A DNA stretch of 63,650 nucleotides, filler included, from Reticulomyxa filosa (taxonomy: Eukaryota > Protista > Foraminifera): the NCBI GenBank assembly GCA_000512085.1. It is 22 parts of 22 records of this genome, joined end to end, with 100 filler letters (N's around TTAATTAATTAA, not from the genome) between each part and the next. Parts side by side here need not be neighbours in the genome. Positions count along the whole stretch, not along the records: positions 1 to 16,588 come from ASPP01007496.1; 21 more parts are not named here. One strand, written 5' to 3'. The notes under the pieces are model-generated. The model ran no database searches, was not told the origin of the DNA, and was given only the letters and a program-made list of their open reading frames with translations. Below, in pieces: positions 200 through 16,588 of this stretch. Positions within the stretch are counted from its first letter, which is position 1. Every line of letters begins with the position of its first letter. The translations under genes were made by a program, and so were the position numbers.

Positions 200-916
200 C
201 TGTTAATTCCATCGCGCTTGTTTCATCGTTTTTGGCAATATCTTCAAAACTCTCATTCACTAGTTGTGGAATTTCATCTTTGGCATTTGCTGCTAATGAT
301 TCGTTCAATCTTGATGCCAGGTTCTTTTATTTTTTTTTTTGAAATTGAGAAGGATAGGAAGGAAGCAATAAATACACAAAAAAAACTTTAATGTGCTGAA
401 GGTTTTCAAAATCCATTTGTGGCAAAATCCCTGGCAATAGTTCTTCAATTCTTTTAATGGAATTTATCCCTGACACTACGTATGCATTGGAACTCACTTC
501 TGCTTGGACTGCGCTTTTAATAAGAAACACACAATAATTATATTCTCTTGTGCTATTATCCATTTACTCCTTTCTCTTTACTCGCTCTATCCTCAATTAT
601 CTATTTCTCAATAACTTGAGAAAGTTTTGTTTTTTTATTCGGTGACACACTGTTTACCTTTTGGTTTTGAAAAATGAACAATTGTGCCATCTTCTTTGAA
701 CAAATTTACTTCTTCAATTGCTGGTATCACTTGGGCATTCAGTTTTTTCAATTCGCTCTGTAATGCTTTTTCCGATTTTACGTGCTCTGTCGCACCTTTC
801 TTGAATTTCCGCCGGCGAATTGTACTTTTGCCACCTGTTTGCGTTGTTGCAACCCCAAACTTTTGTCTGAGGCGCTGTTGAATCTGTTCTTTCGAGAGCT
901 TTGCTTTGCTCGACAT
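200..916 (-). CDS. BTF3: Nascent polypeptide-associated complex beta subunit (BTF3/NAC-beta), at least 3 exons; 3' end approximate
   Basis: GGKSTIRRRK...LKKLNAQVIPAIEEVNLFKEDGTIVHFSKPK|VQAEVSSNAYVVSG...LLPGILPQM and C-terminal DEIPQLVNESFEDIAK; in-frame GT-AG introns at 657-509 and 386-324. Confidence 0.9.
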
Positions 917-1234: not shown

Positions 1235-3778
1235 ATGGAAACCAATTTGCAAGAGTCACAACCATTTCCCGATGGACTTTCCTCAACCCAACCAACAAAA
1301 ATAATCTTACCGCAAGGGAACGAGTCGTTAAACCCTGGAATACGAAGCGACACGGTAGCGAACGAGTTTTCGACCCAATTGGAAAGTAGACGTTGGTGGA
1401 TCGTCTTTTCGTTTGGTTGGAATTCATTTTTGGTAGGCATGGTCCGCATTACATTTGCAGCAATTCAAAGTGAGTCCTCTGAGCACCTGAACGTCTCCCA
1501 GTCCGCAATTGCGCTATTATCTTTGATATTTATGATTTGTTATCCACTTGGATCTTTGTTATCGTCCTTCTGCAACCACCGACTAGGTTCTATATTTTAT
1601 TTACTGATTATTTATTTATATATTTTCTGTTTACTCGCCACGCATTTCTTTGTACACACAATGCGTTCCAACATAACAAATGTAACGTACACGCATGCAC
1701 ATTGCATACAATAACACAACAACAAAAAGGTGTGCGTAACTCATTCTGCTTCGCATCTGTTCTAATATTATTGGGCGTGGCCGTCCGATATATTGGAACA
1801 GTTCACATGCTGTTCTCCTCTGGCCATGCAACCTATGCGATGTTATTGTTTGGACAATTCCTTGTTGGATGTGCACAGCCATTTTATACAGTTTCGATCC
1901 CAATTGAAACACGTCACTAACATACTTAAAAAAAATTCTTGTACACAATTTCGCTTGATTGTAAACTTAGAATTCTCCTTCGTATATCGCCTCGTTGTGG
2001 TTCGACAACCGAGCACGAGACCCCATTACGAGTGTTTTGTAGTGTTTATTTATTTATTTATTTTGGGAGGGGCAGTGATCGTTTAAAGATACGCTGGAGG
2101 GGGGGGGATGGATTGGATACACTTTGACAAACACAGCTGTTGGCAATGTGGAATCTGATAGGAATTGGTTTGTCTCTCCCTTTTGTTTTTGTCCTTGTGT
2201 GTTTTGCAAAGTCTCTTATTTTTCTAAAAAAATTTAAAATAAATAAATAAAAGGACAGGTTTTGGCAGTATCTTCCCAACATTTTTTGTTGAGTCGACAG
2301 AGCAACATTACGGCGGTATGAACACTGGGTTTGACTTGGTTGTTTTTTTTTTTTTTTGACAAAGTGGTAAAGAGGGAATAGATACAATGTCTCGATTTGA
2401 TTGGAATAAGCTATAAAATAGCTGTATACCAAAACAACAACAAAACACAGGCTTTAATGGCATTTGTCTTGTTGAACTTGCTCTTGGCGTGATTGGAATG
2501 TTTTTGACACTGGTCACATTCAAAGGTGGCACATTATTATTATTTCTTCTTTCTTTGTTTTTGCATGCTATGTTTGGGGGGGGGAGGAACTGTAAAAAAG
2601 ATCTGTCATGATGCACATTTACTTTAAATGACTTGTGTGCAGATGGGCCAAAACACCCTCCAAGTGTGTCCGAACAACTCAAAAAACAATATTCCGTCAA
2701 TGACCAAGAACAGATAGTACGTTTCAAAGAAGAGATCCAATTTTTGTTCAGCAACGTCGAATATTTCAAATTGGTCATTGGGTTTGCCTTGGCGTGAGTT
2801 TGTACATACTAAACATTCACATGTATTTTTTTTGGAATGTGTTCCCCCCTCCCTTTCTTCCTCCTACCTTAGAAAAAATTATTACTGTTGTGTTGGACAT
2901 AACAACAGATTTGCGTTGCTTAACGTGTTGACAACACTAATTGATCAATACTGTGAAGCAGGTTTGTAATATTTTCATTTACATTGATCAACTTTTTGTT
3001 CTTGTTAATGAGCGCTCACAAATATGTGATTGGTTTGTAAAGTCAAGTATACCTCCAATGACGCTGGCAAATTTGGAGCGGTACTCTTCGGATCAGGTTC
3101 TTACTTTTATTTTTTTGGTTTGTATTATATATTGTGCATGCTTAGGCTTTGGTATGTTAAATAGGGCTAATTGGTGGCTTCTTGTCCGGAATGGTGATGA
3201 AGAGATATCCTAAATACAAATTATTGCTGAGAATTGGAGGCTTTCTCGGAACTTTATCATTCATTAATTTGCTCTTTCAACTTCGACACGATAATTATCC
3301 ATTGCTACTTGCATCGATGGCATTCGAAGGATTTGTTGGAGTGTCATTGATGCCGATTAGCTTTCAGATGGCTTCTGAAGTCACTTTTCCTGTCAATGAA
3401 AATTTGTCCGCTGGTTTGTTTTCTTTTATTCATTGTCTCTTAAACTTAGCCATTGCTCCATGTTCAAAGAAAAGAAGGGAGAATTAAAATGAATAATCAA
3501 CAATAGGAGTGCTGATGTTGTTCGGCTCAATCACTTCTATTCCAGTGTTGCTAATTTGGCAAAGTTTGATTCCGACGCAAAACCATTACTATAACTCGGT
3601 GTTCAATTCTTCTCTTTATTTCGCGCTTCCGTTAGTGATTATATCTTATTTGTTCATATGGTCCTTCAATGGCGAGGCCAAACGAACGAATGCGGTGAAC
3701 GACGGCTTGCTGTCCTCATTTGCAACAGAAAGTTTCGATTCACATCATGATAGCGATAGTCCCAATGAAGTGTTTTAA
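1235..3778 (+). CDS. MFS transporter of the FLVCR/SLC49 family, multi-exon
   Basis: RRWWIVFSF...ITFAAI, LLFGQFLVGCAQPF and QMASEVTFPVNENLSAG motifs; many hydrophobic exons separated by short introns. Confidence 0.8.
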
Positions 3779-5833: not shown

Positions 5834-7000
5834 TTATATTTTATTTTGATGACCAACAATTTCATTGCATTTGACCCATGTTTCGATTGCTGAAATGGTT
5901 CTAAGTGAGTTTTCGTCAAACATTCTCTTCGAAGCTGTAAGTAAATCTTCATCAAATTCGATTTTTTCGCTTTCAAAAAAGATCAATGCATAGGATCCAC
6001 CGAACCTTTTTTATTCATTTTTTTGCAACTTCAAAAAAATTCATTTTTTTAAGCAACGAAAGTTTTTCGTGTTAACTTAAAAAATGCAAGAGGCTCTCCT
6101 TTTTGTACTTCGTCTCCGATTCCATGCAATAATTGACATGAATTAGCTTCAAACGAGTTAAAAAGCACAATAATCATTAGTCCAATATCGGTGTCAACGA
6201 TTACAATAATCCTTGTGTTGTCTGTTAACACGTTTACCTCTGTAAAGAATACAGCATGTGTGAGACAATAACAGGCTCCACTTGTTTCGGACACATGCAA
6301 AATCTTTCCAGAGTAAGGCATATGTACACCCAAATATTCATGTGACGCCATTCTGGCCCCTAAAACAGCCCATTTCTCGACCTTGCTGGCACTTTCAGCC
6401 AGCGATGGTGCAAGAGCATTCGCTAATAATCTTTCCATTGTAAACTTCGAGCCCTAAATAAAGCAAACTTTTTTGGATCTCTAAAGGGAAAAAAAAAAGT
6501 GTAATGTTTAAGCTTTCAAAACTCGAATCCAGTCTTGTTGACAATTTTCAAACGTTCGGTAAGCAACAATTCTTCCATATACAGGACAAACAATGGAATC
6601 TTTTTTACTCTTGGACAGACGTTTTCGAGCCAGTTTTCGACACAACAGGGAACGAACAGTGGGGTAGTTGGAAAGGAAGGGGGGGTCAAACGCACTCAAA
6701 TCCACGTGGTTAAGCCTCGCAAAAGCGTAAACATACTTCATACTTTCTTGAGTCTCTAACCTTTTGACCTAGCCATTGTTGGACAGAAATGGAAGTGGCT
6801 CTACACTCAAATATATAGTAGCTCAAAACGTACACTAAAAAAAAATGCAAACAAAACAATTAACTCTGCGATTGGAAATACGTTGCAATAGGCGACGAAT
6901 ACGATTTTTGTCCGATCTCGCTAGCCATGCATCATAAAGAGCTTTAAAAACTATCATTACATAGCCAGGAACATGCTCTCGAACTTTCGCTCCGGCATGT
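5834..7000 (-). other. Phosphatidylserine decarboxylase-like domain of the fusion gene
   Basis: RKLARKR...IVCPVYGRIV, RMASHEYLGVHMPYSG, VNVLTDNTR, VQKGEPLAFFKFGGSY match the PSD2 layout. Confidence 0.85.
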
Positions 7001-10000
7001 CTGGTCATGTATGTGTATACGTATAAATTATTTTCTCGTAATCAACTTGTCTAAGCATTTTTTTTTTTTGGGCTGAGAAAATAAAGTACCTGTCAAGAAC
7101 AAAGGATTCATCTTTACGGAAATCGTACAATGGCAACGTAAAAAATCTGACCCACCAACCGGCCTCCAACACATCACATTGCAAAATGGAGTCCTCTCTT
7201 TTGCAGCTGCCGATCACGAAATTTTCTTCGTTGAAACAAACATTAATGCGATTCGAGTGCTGGTATTGTACTTTTAAAAATGTGTACAAATAATACGTAA
7301 GCGGAGTGCTCGTTTCGAACTGATGTTCCGTCAATACCTTCATCACCGTTTTGCTGTCCATATACACACCATCCCAAATTTCTTCCATTTCAGGCTTTGC
7401 ACATTGTGCCCTCTCTATCTTTATTCGACTGGTTTGCTCGGCTGGATTTTCTTTTTTCTCTTCACTTTCATCACATCCCTGCTCTACAATCGTGGCCATT
7501 TTATGCCGATCACTTGAGCATGCAGCTAATAGCGTTTCAAACTCTTGATCACTGGGATGGATACCTTATCAATCACAAATTGAAAACATTTATATTTGCA
7601 CAATAAATAAGTATACGTTTCCCTTCCTCTATCTCATTTTTCGCTCTATGATATAGGATATGAAGATGAGTATATAAGTAATACCTAAACACAACATCAT
7701 TTCGTAAACTGTGGAGCCGGACAAACTCTGGGTATGAGAATTGGTTCCGATGGAATTTTGGAGTTGTTCTTGCGAAAGGTAGGTAGACACATACGTTGTG
7801 TAAAACTGTTTTTCGACGTCTTTGCGCTGTAGCAACTGCACTTCGACAGTGAATGTACCGAGCAATGCTTGTTTTCGACTACTATCGTACCACTCCAGAT
7901 CATCGCTGTTTATATGTTGGAGTGAGTCTTTTCTCAAGTCGTCGAAGGTGAAAGATAGCGATGTGACGGTGCCTCTGCCGGAACGGGGTAGCAGTGTCAG
8001 GGGTTCGAAGGGAAGCAGCACATTTGCCAATGGATTTGTATTGTAGTCATCGTAGGGTTTCATAAAATCAACCAAATCAGATACCGCTTTTTGTTCTAGT
8101 TTTTGTTTTTATTTGCCATTACAATACATATATGTACAAATAAACACACGTATAAATAAATCTTGTATTATTAAAAACCAAACAATATACCAAAAAATAT
8201 AAATGTATGTATACGTAACTTTTTTCGTCAAACCGAGGATTTACTGGCTCTGTAATCCACAATGGTGAAATCAAAGGCTTTTCATGGACATGTAACTGAC
8301 TGTAATTTTGTTTGTTTATTCATTTACTTATTTATTTATTTATTTTTTTGAGCGGAATACCATTTGTAAAAAAAAGTCCATATATATTAACAAGGTCTGC
8401 TTCTTTGCTGGTGACAATTGGATGAGATCTTTCCAATCAATTTGACAATGCCCAATTGTATCATTTATCGATCGCATCTCTTTTTTTTTATTATTATTTT
8501 TAGATCATCCAAAAACAATAAAAGGGAGTGAGTGCAAGGGACAGTGGTTAGGAAAAAAAAAATACCGAACCATCATCAATGAGAGTGAATCGAAGATTGG
8601 AGGGTCTGTCATCCAAATCGCCATTCGCATTGATAAACAGAAAATGCCATTCGTTCCAACTGAAAAGCCCTGGTTGATTTCTACATTGTGTCGCATATCG
8701 ACTGGTGTAAAGTTCGTCATATTTCCATTCGATCTGAGCCACTGGATAATTAAACACCTTTTTCTCATTGCTTTTTGTCTCGCTTTCTTTCTCCTCGCTT
8801 TTGCTTTTACCGTTGCGATCATTGGAAGCACCACAAAAGTGTTTTAATTGAATGGCTAACACGTGCGAATAGCGCGTAGGTTGCTTCCGATCTTTTTGGG
8901 CCAACGCTTCATCCAATGATATCATACTCAAGCGAATTTGCAAGTGGCCTGCATATCTGTCCTGGTCGTGCAGGAGATTTTCTCCGAAATATTTCTTCGT
9001 CGCAACCGAAGAGACAATTGGAACCCAAATGAATTCATCATATTCAGTAAAGTTCTTTTTTTTTTTATTTATTTTTTTTATTTTTTATAATTGTCTTTTG
9101 TTTTTGTTTGAATAAAAATAAACTTGAATAGAAATGGGGACATAGCCAATGATTTGATCGGGGAGATTTGAAGTGGTATTTCTATGACAAACGGTCAAGA
9201 TGATTTGTTGCACATCCACTTCCAAAAAATTGGCATGGAAAATGGGATCACAGCTTTGATACACAATATCCGTACGATACGGGCGATTGGATCGGAGAGA
9301 AACAAACTGCGCTTTGACATATACATTGGGAACCTCCGAATGTGGCTCCTGTCGAGGCAAGTTACGTCCTTGGTAGATCTCCAATACATACACAAGTGAT
9401 TCGGGAGACATCTGCGAGTCTTGCAGCAGATCGTTGGTGCCATTTTCTTCAAAGTACTTTTTTTCTCGTGCCCTTCGTACATACGTATACATGTATATAC
9501 ATATACATATACAAACATACATACATGTGTGTACAAAAGTTTAGAACTTTAAAAAAACATTTCTTTTTCGTTCACTTTCTCTCTCTCTCAGTCGAAAGTA
9601 AACTTGACAATTGCTTTAATAAATTTGACCCATCTGTGCCGATCTTGTACAGATGGAGCACGCAATTTCCATATTCGATCCTTGCACACTACTTGAAAAG
9701 GATACGTTGGTGAGCCATCTGAATTTAGAGTCGCCTTGGTGTCACCATCGTTTTTGATAGGATCGTTTTCATTACAATCCACTCGAATGAAGTTGGAGTT
9801 TCCCAAATTTATTACACCTTTAAATTCCTGTTGGTTTGTGTAGTACGTTATCGTTAAGTCGTCTTTTAGCACAAAATACCGATACTTCCACGTGGGCATC
9901 ACATTGCCCTTTTTCCACAAGCATCCTTGGCATATACAGCTTCCAGTTTTCTATTACGTATATATATATACATATATATATACACGTATATACTTTTTTT

Positions 10001-11149
10001 TTTTTTTAAACTACCAAACTTTTTGTTTGGACCGAAAAGTGGAAGACTCTGTGGGGGAGAGGACCAGGGCAGATCTTTCCCTTTTGGACGTTGAATTGAC
10101 AGTGGTATTGGCCTTGCCTTTGGTGTCGCTCTCGGTTTTGTTGACAGAAAAGAGTCCGAATAGACGAGACAGCGAAGATGGTACTGGTTTCTCGTCCGAG
10201 GTCATTACTGTAGATACGTCGTTACTTTTTTCGCAAGCGACCAAATCTGGCTGAGGAGGAATAGCAGAGGATTTGCAAGGCACAGGCAATTGTAAAGTCG
10301 TCTTGTGTGCAGCACAATATTGTTGAACACAATGTCGAAAGAACTGCTTAATTTGTTTCCCGTTTTTGCTACTTATCTTCATACCACTCAACCATAGATC
10401 ACGGGCAAGATATCCCTCGAGCTCTGTGTCACTCTGTTTTTTTTATCATATATACATATATATATATATTTTTTTTTTTTTTGAAGGATGAAAAAAACAA
10501 AAAAGCGGAACTACAAAGGTAGGACTTGAGATATCGCATTGCAGTGTTTTCTCGTCGATGAGGTCTTCTCGCGTTGATAGGAACACAACAGGAGTTGGAT
10601 AGGGTGAACAGGGTTGCTTGGGTTTGCGTTGGGAAAGTTTCGAAATAAATTGGTGCACTTTTACAGCTGTGTAAAAAGATGCTCGCACTTGTCTGTCGAA
10701 TACCAACACAATCACATCGTAGTGTTGGAGCCAATATCGACGAACGACATAGTCATCCATTTGGTCCGCTGGAGATGTCAAAGAATCACTAGTGTTGCTG
10801 TCATTGGATACATTAATGGTCATTGCATCCCTCAATCCGTACAATGATGGCACATCTGTTCCTGATATATCTTTAAATATGATGTGTGTCAGTAATCTGT
10901 TGTTATATTTTTTTTTCAATTCCTCTAAAATGGTAAACAATTTTGATCTCTACCTTGCGTATCCAAGATTTCAAGCAGGAATTGTCTCTTCTCGACTTCG
11001 AACATTTTTTCATAAGTTTGTTCGAGAGTACTTTGTTGTAAAGGCAAGTCCGTGAGCTGCCGGTTTAGGAACGAATGTATCAAGGTGGATTTCCCCACTT
11101 TATTTCCTAGTACGGCTATTTTCACACGGATTTGGTTGTTGGAAGACAT
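5834..11149 (-). CDS. Multi-exon fusion protein: Ras-like GTPase - PH - C2 - C2 - PSD2-type phosphatidylserine decarboxylase-like domain (probably inactive)
   Basis: Exons join in frame by GT-AG introns (e.g. PH AIV-K|AREKKY C2; LLQRISNRR|VKRLETQES; AFF-K|FGGSY). Motifs: KIAVLGNKVGKST/LDTQG, WKKGNVMPTWKYRYFVL, LEIYQGRNLP, FKFGGSY...IEFDEDLL...ETWVK; stop TAA at 5834-5836. Confidence 0.75.
10310..11149 (-). other. Degenerate Ras-like small GTPase domain of the fusion gene
   Basis: G1-like GNKVGKST, G3-like LEILDTQG, VIVLVFD strand, G4 position STRED, G5-like ISSKNG. Confidence 0.75.
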
Positions 11150-11237: not shown

Positions 11238-14200
11238 ATGCGCTCCAAAAGCGTCTCTTGTCAGCCACAAAAAAATGTCTTTAAGATAGATTGTACCTTA
11301 TTACTTTTTAAAAAATTTTTACTTTATGTTTTTGACATTTTAAGGAATTTTTGCAAACTAAATGTGTGCAACAAAAAAGCTCACGAATTCAGGTCATTAG
11401 TCCTCAAAGCCATTGACAGTCCAGAGAGACTCGAATCCATGTCTTTGAAAAAGAATGTAGACCGCTCTCTGTGGCTAATATTGGATGGCTTTCCAACAAA
11501 TGCAGATTTCAATGACGTGGGGGGGCGTGTGCGACAAATAGTGGATGATGTTTGCCAAAGAGTGAGTCAAAATATACAATCTCCGGTATTCTGGATTCCA
11601 ATTGACAATGATGAAAAAAAACAACACTACCACAAAATTCGCGGGTTTGCATTAATACAAGCACCAAACCGTGAATATGCAAGTTCGTTCGAAAAGAAAG
11701 GGAGGATTTTCTTTTTTTTTAAAAAAAGGGGGGGCGACATTAAAAACTTGGAAAAGTTCTGGCATTTCTGAATTTTCTTTGAAGGGAGAAAGAGAGTGTG
11801 TGCGTGAGAAGAGAGAAAATAAAAGAGATTCAACAAATAAACAGACAACACAAACAAAATGAACATAACAAAGACGTGTTTCGCGACAGTTACTGGGCAC
11901 ACAAAGCACTGGAAGGATACAATGTGTCGTGTTGGATGTGGAATGAAGTCCAAGAAAAAATGAAAATTAGCGACACATTCGAGAAGATAGGGAAGAATGA
12001 ATTTTTAGAAGAGAGAAATTTGTATTGGTGGTTGTTGGATAAAGACGGCAAAGAAGGGTACAGAGACCAATATGTTGCACGATTTCGTGGGCAACAATTT
12101 GAAGAGACCATTGTATATTGGCACGATGAGCGAATTAGCAAAACAGGTCGTGTTGAATCATATGATGGCAAGAGAGAGCATACAAATAGAGAGGTTTGTT
12201 TTATGTGCGTGTTTTTGACAAAATGAAAATAATAATAATAATAAAAAAGGAAATGACATCCAATCATGTTCAATGGTCGCCCAAAGGATCATATTTGGTA
12301 TCGTTTCACTTACAAGGGATACAATTGTGGGGAGGGCCGGACTGGGCCAAATTACAACGCTTTGAACATTGGTTTGTCGATCAAATCGATTGGTCGCCTG
12401 ATGAAACGAGAATGATCACATGCAATAGTGTCGAGCAAACCAACAAAGATGGTCGACGTTATTTGCCAGTTTAAAAAATAAAATAAAGGAAGATTTCCTT
12501 TTGATTTGTAAATATATTTCTCCTTGCACAATAAATAAATCGCATTCCCTCCATTCATTTGTCTTCATGTCGAAATAGACAATCTACATATGGGATCCAC
12601 TGACAGGAGAACGATTGCGAGAATTTACACATGACGCCATTGGGCCATTGTTAAAACTTCGACGCAGTGGCTGGTGGCCAATGTTCAAATGGGGAGCGAA
12701 AGACAAATATTTTGCACAAATCGCGACCTCGAAAAAAAACAAAGTGACGGCGAAAATGAAAGATATCGACCGCATAAACATCTTTGATGGAGTAGAGTTG
12801 ACACGTTTGGACAAGGCCGCACATTCGGCGCCCAACGTGTTTGACTTTGCATTTAGTCCTACTGACGACCTCCTCGCCTATTGCAGTCGAGCCCTCGGAA
12901 ATGACGCCGCCAAAGTCACAATCATCTCATTGCCAAGTAAAAAAGCAGAACGTGTTCAAACCCTGGGCTTTGACGCTGGCATCACTCATGTGTATTGGCA
13001 ATCAGAAGGAAAATACTTGGCCGTCACCATTGGGCATGTCGAAGGTAAGAGGCTACGAAAGAACAGTATCGGCATTTTGGCCGTTCATCAAGAAAATATG
13101 CCGTGGCAATTGACCGAAAGCATGATGAAGTTTTGTTTCAATTTCGATTTCTCCCAAATCAAACTCCTCGCGGTGCAATACTTGTTTTTTTGAATGATTT
13201 GAAAGGTTGACCTTTTTTGCATGGGAGCCAGATAGCAATCGATTTGGAATTTTACACAATGATCTTGACAATCCCGATGTTTCCTTTTATCAAATTAAAC
13301 AGCCTACAAATCCAGTCAAACTATGTTACATGTTTATATATTACATATGTGTATATATTTTTTTCTTTTTTTTTAAAAAAAAAAACAACAACAATAATTG
13401 GGAACATACTAAACAGTTACGCTATCAAAAAGAAAAGCAAACAATATATTCTGGGCACCAAGAGGCGGAAGATGTGTAATTACACACATTGACCGCGAAA
13501 GTAAAGGAAGAACTGAAACACAATTGGAATTTGTAGATTTGGCATTGAATGGATCTAGCACCGCCGTGGCAGTTTAAATTTTTTTTTAAAAAAAAAGAGG
13601 ATATAATTTGTGTAAACTCCGTTTTGCTAGTAATAACATTTATTATGGATACAAAAAGAGTCATGAAGGTGCAGTGGAGTTGCACTGGTGTCCATCAGGT
13701 CGTTATGTGATAACTGCAGCAACTCAACCAATTGGAACAAAAACTTCCGGAAGTGACACAGGATATACTGTGTGGTCTTGTCAAGGTGATCAGTTGTTTA
13801 AACATACAATTCATTATTTTTTCCAAATTTTGTGGCGGCCACGTCCCAAAGAAATACGATTGGAATCCAAAGAAGATGAAAAAAAATGTCAGGAAATGTT
13901 GCTCAAACAATACTATAATGTATTTGAGCAACGTGATACTGAAGTCCGTCGACAACATCAATCCAAATTTGTTCAAATCAATTTGGCGAAATGGGCTTCA
14001 TGGAATTCTTTGCAAGAACAATGGAAAAAAAAAACAAAAGAAATCTCAAAAAAAAGAACCAAAGTTTATTTTTTCTTGCTTTTTTTTTCCCTCTCTTTTT
14101 TTGTCGATCCGGTCATTAGACCTTCTTTTTTTTTTTTTGTGGTTCGTTTAGAAACGTGGCTTCTCGTCGGAAGGAGAAGAAGACGACTTTGAAGTCACTA

Positions 14201-14445
14201 CAGTGGAACAGGAAAGAACTGAAAAGTCCGAAGAAAGAGTAATCAATCATGCCATTTTGTCGAGAATATTAAATGGTGAAAAAATCACAATTGGAGATAT
14301 TGACGAAATGGAACAACAGGAAAGCTCGACCGCTGATGCGGGGAGCAATTTTGGCAATTACGCAGCGGCATTACAAAGGCGCTCGGATTCCACTTACAAT
14401 GGCTCTGGGCAAGGATACACGGGTCATAGAGCTGGATTTCGTTGA
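11238..14445 (+). CDS. EIF3B: Eukaryotic translation initiation factor 3 subunit B (eIF3b/Prt1), multi-exon; start uncertain
   Basis: N-terminal RRM (LILDGFP...RGFALIQ), WSPKGSYLVSFHLQGIQLWGG, WPMFKW, FAWEP, WCPSGRYV, FQILWRPRP. Confidence 0.92.
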
Positions 14446-14816: not shown

Positions 14817-16455
14817 ATGCATTCGCAAAATGTTCGCAGTGATACAACACAGTATCTCTTATGTTCAAGTTCGTGTTTGTGATCTTCTCATTCGTGCAAC
14901 CTTGTATTAAGCCTTTTGCTTGTTGTCACGAATTTAGGTTTTGCGATCCCACTGAGTCTCTTCGTAATGTCCACGTACCTCCGTAACAAAGTTAATACTT
15001 TTTTTTTTGTCAAGAAAAAATGTACTTTGGCACATTGAACAAGTCAAGCCAAGATAAACAAATAAAACAAAAAGAATTTTCGTCGACATCCAGCTCCCAT
15101 CATATTTGGTCGCAGTATATCGCACTTATTATTGGGCGCAGTGACATTGGTCTGGAAACTGTTGGATATTGCCTCAAACTATAATGTTCGGTTGTTTATA
15201 ATAACTATGTATTATAAGAAAATAAAGAATGGAATCGTTTACTTTGTTTGGGGGGGTTGATGAAACAAAAAGGACAACATTTGCGCGTATGTCGGAACCC
15301 TTTCGATAGTGTTTTACTACGCATCGGCATTTCATTTTATTGGAATATGCTATGACTTGCTGATATCATTTTTATACCCATTGTACCCGAGTTCAGAGAT
15401 AGTGCGAAGCGTACAAATGTATACGTGGGGACTGAGCGTGCTTGGTGGGAGCGTAGGCTACTGGACGAGCATACACGCCCACAAAAAGCACTGCGTATTC
15501 CACGACGGCAACAGGTTCATAACATGGTCGCTGACGGCGGTCTATTCTTTGGGGGTGGTCTTGGGCATATGCACTTCGATCTTCGGTTGGAGCAGAATAT
15601 CGGTGGGTTTGGCCGATACCATGGAATTGAGAAAGTTCAATTTGAAATGACAAACTGTGAAGTTTTTTTTAAAAATATTAAAAAATAAAGATATTTGGTT
15701 TTTTTTTTAAAAAAATTAAAAAAAAATGAACAAATGCATTAAAAAAAAAAAAAAAAAGACGAATAATAACAGAACACGCAATCTTTTCGTTAGGATATAG
15801 TGTAATGGGAATTGGAGGGGTTTTTTTTTGGCATATTTTTACTATGGCGCCAGTGTGGACTCGTACGAACGGCAATTTAGTGACGTTTTGGGAATGCTGT
15901 TAATTGGCAACCCACTACTCGACGCACTGATGTGGTGCTACTTCAAATACCTCCCCGAGCGACGCGTCAAAAAACAACAAAAAAAAAGCCAGAAAAAAGG
16001 ACCGGGCAAACATGGCGACTATCAGCAGTTATCCGAAGAGAAGAAGGAAGACGAAGACGAAGAAGATGAAGAAGACGAAGAAGAAGAAGAAGAAGAAAAT
16101 GATAATGATAATAAGAACAACAATAGCGACAGTCGTGTCGAAATGGGACATTTAAAAAATCGCAAAAAAATATCCAAAAAAAAATATGCTAACTACGCTT
16201 CAAAGAATTTGCCACATAATGACGCTTCTGAGTTGCTGTTGGCTGATATCAGTGAAGATCAACAGTTTCACCAAAAAAAAATTTCCTCTTTCTCTCTCCT
16301 TCTATCTCACTGAATAATAATAATAATTATTATTATCATTAAATCTCATCTTATTAGGGAGCTCATGCTTGCGTCACATATGTCGCATATGCGTCGGCTA
16401 CAAAAGGATCAAGACCAAATTGAGAAAACTATCTCTGATGCTTTGCGAAAAGAAG
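14817..16455 (+). CDS. 7TM GPCR-like protein (cAMP-receptor-like), probable GPCR-PIPK, truncated by contig end; 5' end uncertain
   Basis: Spliced TM segments: SLFVMSTYLRNK|NFRRHPAPIIFGRS, CAYVG...CYDLLISFLYP, TM7 NPLLDALMW; acidic tail, then ISDALRKE followed by a GT donor. Confidence 0.65.
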
Positions 16456-16588
16456 TTAATGGATATATATATACCTATACTTTTATATGCATATACATGC
16501 ATAATATGTATGATACACGTAATGAAAGACCTTGTGGACGGATCGTTTTTGATACCTTCTTTGCTCTTTCATTCTTCCTCTTTCCCCC

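Follow-up and report, generated by a model that had tools for sequence, protein, structure and literature searches.

Phosphatidylserine decarboxylases (PSDs) are housekeeping lipid enzymes that are regulated by substrate supply and by partner proteins. Type II PSDs, such as yeast Psd2 and proteins from Stygiella (P0017) and Anaeramoeba (P0030), carry two C2 domains and an EF-hand-like region ahead of a PSD domain that has a GGS cleavage motif and an N-terminal extension. The gene described here lies on the minus strand at positions 5834 to 11149 of a 63,650-nucleotide (nt) stretch of DNA from the foraminiferan Reticulomyxa filosa (assembly GCA_000512085.1), and this whole stretch, made of joined parts of 22 records, is referred to below as the window. 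The gene has the same C2-C2-(EF-like)-PSD order, GGS motif, and PSD extension as the type II enzymes, but it adds a Ras-like domain and a PH domain, and the Ca2+ ligands of its C2 and EF-hand-like regions are mostly lost. The RFH of the PSD motif YHRFH is altered in the whole foraminiferan clade to which it belongs, and the catalytic His and Asp are lost in the window copy. We favor the reading, with a probability of roughly 0.62, that the gene encodes a foraminiferan variant of the type II PSDs and that the window copy is a catalytically dead, lipid-binding membrane adaptor. A literature search, with most subscription journals outside its scope, found no description of a Ras-PH-C2-C2-PSD fusion, which agrees with the statement in an earlier note on this DNA (the original prediction) that no PSD with an N-terminal small GTPase and PH domain was known. 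The fusion is thus apparently an undescribed variant of the type II family; its list of domains is derivable from public databases.

The gene model and its domains are as follows.

5834..11149, minus strand: whole fusion gene, 14 exons, 1374 amino acids (aa)
11149-10954, 10861-10512, 10433-10020, 9950-9604, 9472-9124, minus strand: exons 1 to 5
9054-8571, 8479-8392, 8299-8220, 8095-7685, 7564-7090, minus strand: exons 6 to 10
7000-6865, 6768-6523, 6453-6077, 6005-5834, minus strand: exons 11 to 14
10307..11128, minus strand: Ras-superfamily G domain, exons 1 to 3, about aa 8 to 225 (Pfam Ras, alignment to Rap1b, profile against PDB)
10020..10306, minus strand: linker rich in Ser, Thr, and Lys, with little conservation (15% identity with a paralogue)
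9604..9950, minus strand: PH domain (Pfam), with a K-x(8)-K-x-R phosphoinositide-binding signature (Lys at 9914, Arg at 9881)
9473..9603, minus strand: phase-2 intron between PH and the first C2 domain, including a TGA at 9590-9588
8919..9396, minus strand: first C2 domain (C2A), exons 5 and 6, Ca2+-ligand aspartates mostly replaced
7830..8871, minus strand: second C2 domain (C2B), exons 6 to 9 (alignments, and AlphaFold2 [AF2] and Foldseek analysis of the Nonionella stella counterpart)
7270..7825, minus strand: helical region where Psd2-type proteins have their EF-hand pair (alignment to the Stygiella and Anaeramoeba PSDs)
5834..7160, minus strand: type II PSD domain, exons 10 to 14 (Pfam, 1e-12)

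The 13 introns are all of the GT-AG type and 69 to 131 nt long, and local joining of the exons gives a 4125-nt frame with no internal stops. GC content is 0.33 to 0.46 in the exons and 0.10 to 0.33 in the introns, and read-through of any of the 13 introns meets a stop. In-frame alternative boundaries a few codons away are present at the end of exon 2 and the start of exon 9. Database searches and fold predictions were made with single exons or retrieved proteins; the joined 1374-aa model was used in local scripts only. Pfam, applied exon by exon, detects Ras (7e-7), PH (1e-13), C2 (4e-7), and PS_Dcarbxylase (1e-12), in that order; along the whole gene, Ras-like, PH, and two C2 domains are followed by an EF-hand-like region that is degenerate and then by a PSD of type II (Psd2-like). 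The original prediction had called a single gene with these domains in this order, which the Pfam scan, the 14-exon model, and the relatives described below bear out. It had also proposed about a dozen exons with GT-AG junctions, and the three junction sequences that it quoted are correct, but two of its introns need adjustment (10019-9951 and 9603-9473 rather than 10018-9951 and 9607-9475).

We infer the splicing of the window copy from its homologues. A search of 1.84 billion representatives with exon 13 returned two R. filosa proteins as top matches, at 69% and 42% identity. The fusion gene is 69% identical across exon 13 to ETO21380.1 (L001) and 42 to 51% identical in most domains to a paralogue on ASPP01003961.1 (L002, consisting of ETO32747.1 and an upstream 787-aa model). 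All 13 introns of L002 have the same phase as those of the fusion gene, 12 of them in the same alignment column and the other within one column. Exon 9 of L002 is shifted out of frame by 1 nt within ten consecutive A (L002:9322-9331); this frameshift, either a true lesion or an error of the assembly, was bridged for comparison. No synteny was found between the fusion-gene locus and L002 outside the gene itself. In N. stella, a single 1217-aa open reading frame (ORF; P0009, EukProt EP01083_P140405), which we take to be transcript-derived, has Ras, PH, C2, and PSD domains in the same order and is collinear with the fusion-gene model over all three aligned blocks. Because all intron phases match those of L002 and the model is collinear with the single-ORF N. 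stella protein, the one-gene model is not a product of chance. Two marine contigs carry long parts of the same arrangement without interruption: a single 601-codon frame of L003 runs from the end of the G domain through PH and C2A into C2B, most of which it covers, and L003 has intron 6 in common with the fusion gene; in L005, one 509-codon frame spans the C-terminal half of the G domain and continues through PH and C2A. This is a single gene with the domain order given above, and the same architecture is present in other foraminiferan-type sequences, including the N. stella ORF and the R. filosa paralogue. N. stella P0009, L002, and L001 belong to the same family; they are unannotated, or split and labeled only "phosphatidylserine decarboxylase." We count the window gene as a further copy alongside L001 and L002, which makes at least three copies in the Reticulomyxa-type clade.

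The alternative at the level of the gene model is that there are two adjacent genes, a Ras-PH gene whose stop would be the TGA at 9588 and a distinct C2-C2-PSD gene. That TGA is in frame after the PH domain, and the NCBI annotation splits paralogue L002 into two proteins (787 and 572 aa), but the split falls after C2 and not after PH. Every intron of the fusion gene, however, contains a read-through stop. In addition, the PH-C2A intron is found at the same codon and in the same phase in L002 and in the marine contigs L006 and L007, and it is missing from L003, L005, and the N. stella ORF, so that one site is common to four loci and absent from three relatives. Its recurrence in two marine contigs and absence from two others indicate that the TGA is intronic. 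A separate C2-PSD gene was found in none of the relatives examined. Based on the read-through stops and the distribution of this intron, we rejected the two-gene model, which is scarcely credible.

Other searches for relatives were less productive, and they are lossy (one profile search missed P0002, a member of its own query). A full-length search with P0009 returned only P0009 itself and an ordinary Anaeramoeba PSD, profile searches added fragments only, a feature search with exon 10 gave no match, and metagenome scans gave either no match or an unrelated PH-bearing gene. No nonforaminiferan protein with Ras, PH, C2, and PSD domains was found in these lossy protein and profile searches. In the Tara Oceans metagenome relative (L004; P0034/P0068), a gap of only some 260 nt within L004:1-2830 separates the linker from the C2B end, and neither PH nor C2A is matched inside that gap. 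An unusual PSD fusion of another kind, P0016, joins a PSD to DUF3419 and is unrelated to the foraminiferan family.

The state of the PSD active site, numbered by alignment to the Escherichia coli enzyme, is as follows in the window copy.

6579 (codon), minus strand: Asp90-equivalent, Tyr1174
6339, minus strand: Asp142-equivalent, Glu1231
6333, minus strand: His144-equivalent, Leu1233 (TTG)
6324, minus strand: His147-equivalent, His1236, kept
5995, minus strand: cleavage Ser of GGS, Ser1322, kept (FGGS at aa 1319 to 1322)

The cleavage motif is of the GGS(T) type rather than LGST. In a PSD tree, seven foraminiferan sequences form a clade (support of 100/100) among the type II, C2-bearing GGST enzymes and apart from the bacterial LGST ones, with the deeper branches weakly supported; this placement, together with the C2-C2-PSD order and the GGS motif, supports the kinship to Psd2 that had been proposed. 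We derive the C-terminal two thirds of the protein from a type II PSD. Nearly all other aligned PSDs keep the His144-equivalent, a residue assigned to the substrate carboxylate and to the triad, and it is also kept within the family by N. stella, L003, the Tara sequence, and a further relative, P0044. It is Leu in the window copy, L001, and L002, which form a clade of their own (100/100, stem of 0.9) within the foraminiferan clade. A sequencing error at this codon was considered and rejected, since Leu is found in three copies with three different codons. N. stella differs from the window copy in keeping Asp, His, and Ser, one more relative has all three as well, and P0044 keeps His and Asp (the GGS end is missing from its sequence). 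The Tara sequence keeps His and has lost Asp90 and the GGS Ser, possibly a second, independent degeneration. N. stella has a second PSD, P0023 (EP01083_P101635), with all motifs canonical, hydrophobic N-terminal segments, and no C2 domain, which could supply housekeeping activity or could be a prey contaminant.

Mutants of E. coli PSD at His144 show no decarboxylation and slow maturation but still form the PE (phosphatidylethanolamine) adduct, and Glu at Asp142 can complement in E. coli (PMC7952604). In Plasmodium PSD, His195, the His144-equivalent, is essential for decarboxylation, Asp139 is needed for maturation, and the second His drives self-cleavage (PMC10172927). Since His144 appears to have changed to Leu before duplication in the Reticulomyxa-type clade, the window copy most likely cannot decarboxylate phosphatidylserine (PS). 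The original prediction had overlooked the loss of the essential His and Asp.

A different explanation is that the window copy is still an active pyruvoyl enzyme that uses PS by way of the second His, or uses another lipid substrate, with the N-terminal module serving for targeting only. It gains from the presence of the GGS Ser and the His147-equivalent in all three Reticulomyxa-type copies, from self-cleavage driven by the second His in Plasmodium (PMC10172927) and slow maturation of the E. coli His144 mutants (PMC7952604), and from purifying selection on the PSD domain. However, neither of the two enzymes tested (E. coli and Plasmodium) decarboxylates without the first His, and Asp90, which Plasmodium PSD needs for maturation, is lost as well, and we regard activity as unlikely. 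That the gene is instead a decaying duplicate with no current function would fit its many degenerate motifs and the 1-nt frameshift in the A run of paralogue L002. This explanation has very little probability, given a stop-free 4125-nt frame, 13 intact splice junctions, and a ratio of nonsynonymous to synonymous substitution rates (dN/dS) of about 0.2 at a dS of about 1.1. The value against L001 is 0.19 over 300 codons, and domain by domain against L002 it is 0.13 to 0.46 where computable. These ratios indicate that the fusion gene, including its PSD domain, is under purifying selection.

The N-terminal domain has a Ras fold, as originally predicted, but its GTPase motifs are degenerate, which had been overlooked. 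The P-loop (G1, at 11107) is one residue short of the GxxxxGKS/T spacing in the fusion gene, L002, L007, and N. stella. G3 (DxxG) is DTQG (10963) in the fusion gene, with the Gly spanning intron 1, and has no Gly in L002, L007, or N. stella; an insertion follows G3 in the fusion gene. G4 (NKxD) is replaced by TRED (10574), with TRED, ARED, and TCSD found across members, and G5 is SSK (10373). A model of the N. stella G domain (AF2 confidence score pLDDT, 63) has a Ras fold, with a Foldseek E value of 3e-10 to KRAS and Z scores near 14 against each of Rab, Miro, and Ras. The pG1 and pG2 domains of p190RhoGAP (PMC5593906) are likewise Ras folds with degraded G motifs in a multidomain protein. 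Under the definition of that paper, our G domain is of the pseudoGTPase type; it is likely a pseudoGTPase or an atypical GTPase, and because its degradation is milder than that of pG1 and pG2 (GKS is kept), binding of nucleotide without cycling is possible. The AGAP/centaurin-gamma proteins (GTPase-like, PH, ArfGAP, and ankyrin domains) also have a degenerate Ras-like domain directly ahead of a PH domain, and AGAP1 was the sole feature-search lead for residues 1 to 600 of P0009, a weak one (0.78). Membership in that family was rejected: Pfam found no ArfGAP or ankyrin domain in the fusion gene, and the G domain matches AGAP (AGAP1 G domain, Z of 13.4) no better than it matches Rab, Miro, and Ras (Z of 14.4 to 13.4). 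For the latter reason, the Ras-PH pair looks like an assembly parallel to that of AGAP.

The best solved-structure match of the PH domain is the Grp1/cytohesin PH domain. About 25 residues separate it from C2A. C2B has no Pfam match in the fusion gene, and its profile matches canonical C2 domains weakly (E of 0.003, probability of 10%), but a C2 fold is seen for its N. stella counterpart (AF2 and Foldseek; top matches are C2 domains, best E of 2.6e-5). The loop-1 aspartates of C2B are lost and the loop-3 acidic residues are kept in part, and relative to N. stella there is an insertion of about 90 aa ahead of the last strand. The assignment of 7270..7825 to an EF-hand pair is putative, drawn from position and weak similarity; no Ca2+-loop motif is present in the alignable region, and there is no Pfam EF-hand match.

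The original prediction had proposed a multi-lipid-sensing tether or scaffold. The scaffold part is plausible and fits better with a dead active site. A contact-site tether would bridge two membranes, with PH on one and the C2 and PSD domains on the other. What speaks for it is that one chain combines a flexible linker with several modules for lipid binding, and that a contact-site role has been proposed for yeast Psd2. However, a simple motif and hydropathy scan of the fusion protein detected neither a CAAX box nor an FFAT-like motif, and no transmembrane helix (a transmembrane anchor was rejected, since the hydrophobic peaks are PSD core strands). The short PH-C2A spacing would be suited to a coincidence detector acting on a single membrane, and the proposal that yeast Psd2 works at a contact site has been contested (PMC7199851). 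We consider a tether improbable.

In the preferred reading, that of a dead lipid-binding adaptor, a degenerate Ras-like domain and a PH domain would have been added ahead of the C2-C2-EF-PSD core in a foraminiferan type II PSD subfamily. The product would be a soluble peripheral membrane protein. Its PH domain would recognize a phosphoinositide, its C2 domains would attach to anionic lipid or to partners with no need for Ca2+, and between them they would deliver the PSD domain to cytosolic leaflets rich in PS. The Ras-like domain would serve for protein binding or autoinhibition and not as a GTPase switch that cycles. The N. stella, L003, and P0044 proteins would be signal-targeted and probably active PSDs, and in the foraminifera that keep His, docking by PH and C2 would target PS-to-PE conversion. 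In the Reticulomyxa-type clade, the change of His144 to Leu would have come first, followed by duplication to at least three copies, and the window copy would have been retained as a pseudoenzyme adaptor, possibly with slow self-cleavage at GGS. Several observations weigh against this reading. The GGS Ser and the His147-equivalent are retained, as are an acidic residue at Asp142 and an Arg in the place of Tyr137, which leaves room for maturation or for altered chemistry. GKS and DxxG are kept in the window copy, so its G domain may still bind nucleotide. The lipid specificity and the Ca2+ independence are predictions from motifs, and dN/dS against L002 is rough because dS is near saturation.

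A broader proposal, which we hold tentatively, is that these proteins are signal-gated PSDs in which the pseudoGTPase-PH module would couple phosphoinositide signaling to local PS-to-PE conversion on moving membranes, and which would have become dead PS/PE-sensing adaptors at least two times (by His loss in the Reticulomyxa clade and by loss of the GGS Ser in the Tara sequence). Such an adaptor may possibly serve membrane traffic in the reticulopodia.

Other genes or predicted gene regions noticed in the window around the fusion gene, and one gene at another locus, are as follows.

635-916, minus strand: NAC-domain gene, NAC-beta/BTF3-like (Pfam, 1.6e-11)
1235-3778, plus strand: multi-exon major facilitator superfamily transporter (one exon matches MFS_1, 2e-4)
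12196-14445, plus strand: WD40 gene with an eIF2A-family match (5e-7), head to head with the fusion gene and probably eIF3 subunit b
14900-16588, plus strand: predicted membrane-protein exons with an acidic Lys-rich tail, with no convincing Pfam match
L008:1018-4294: unrelated eukaryotic gene with an apparent C2 domain, myotubularin-like region, and PH domain (from translation)

The architecture is so far found in foraminifera-like sequences only, which limits its reach, and the split public annotation of L002 is corrected by this analysis. For the PSD family, the combination of a built-in phosphoinositide reader with a G domain suggests PS-to-PE conversion that is switched by signaling. With a dead version that is conserved, the PSD fold would join the list of pseudoenzymes; we know of no earlier class of pseudo-PSD, and this would be the first, if true. 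The N. stella and Reticulomyxa-type proteins form a natural pair for comparison of live and dead versions of the same enzyme.

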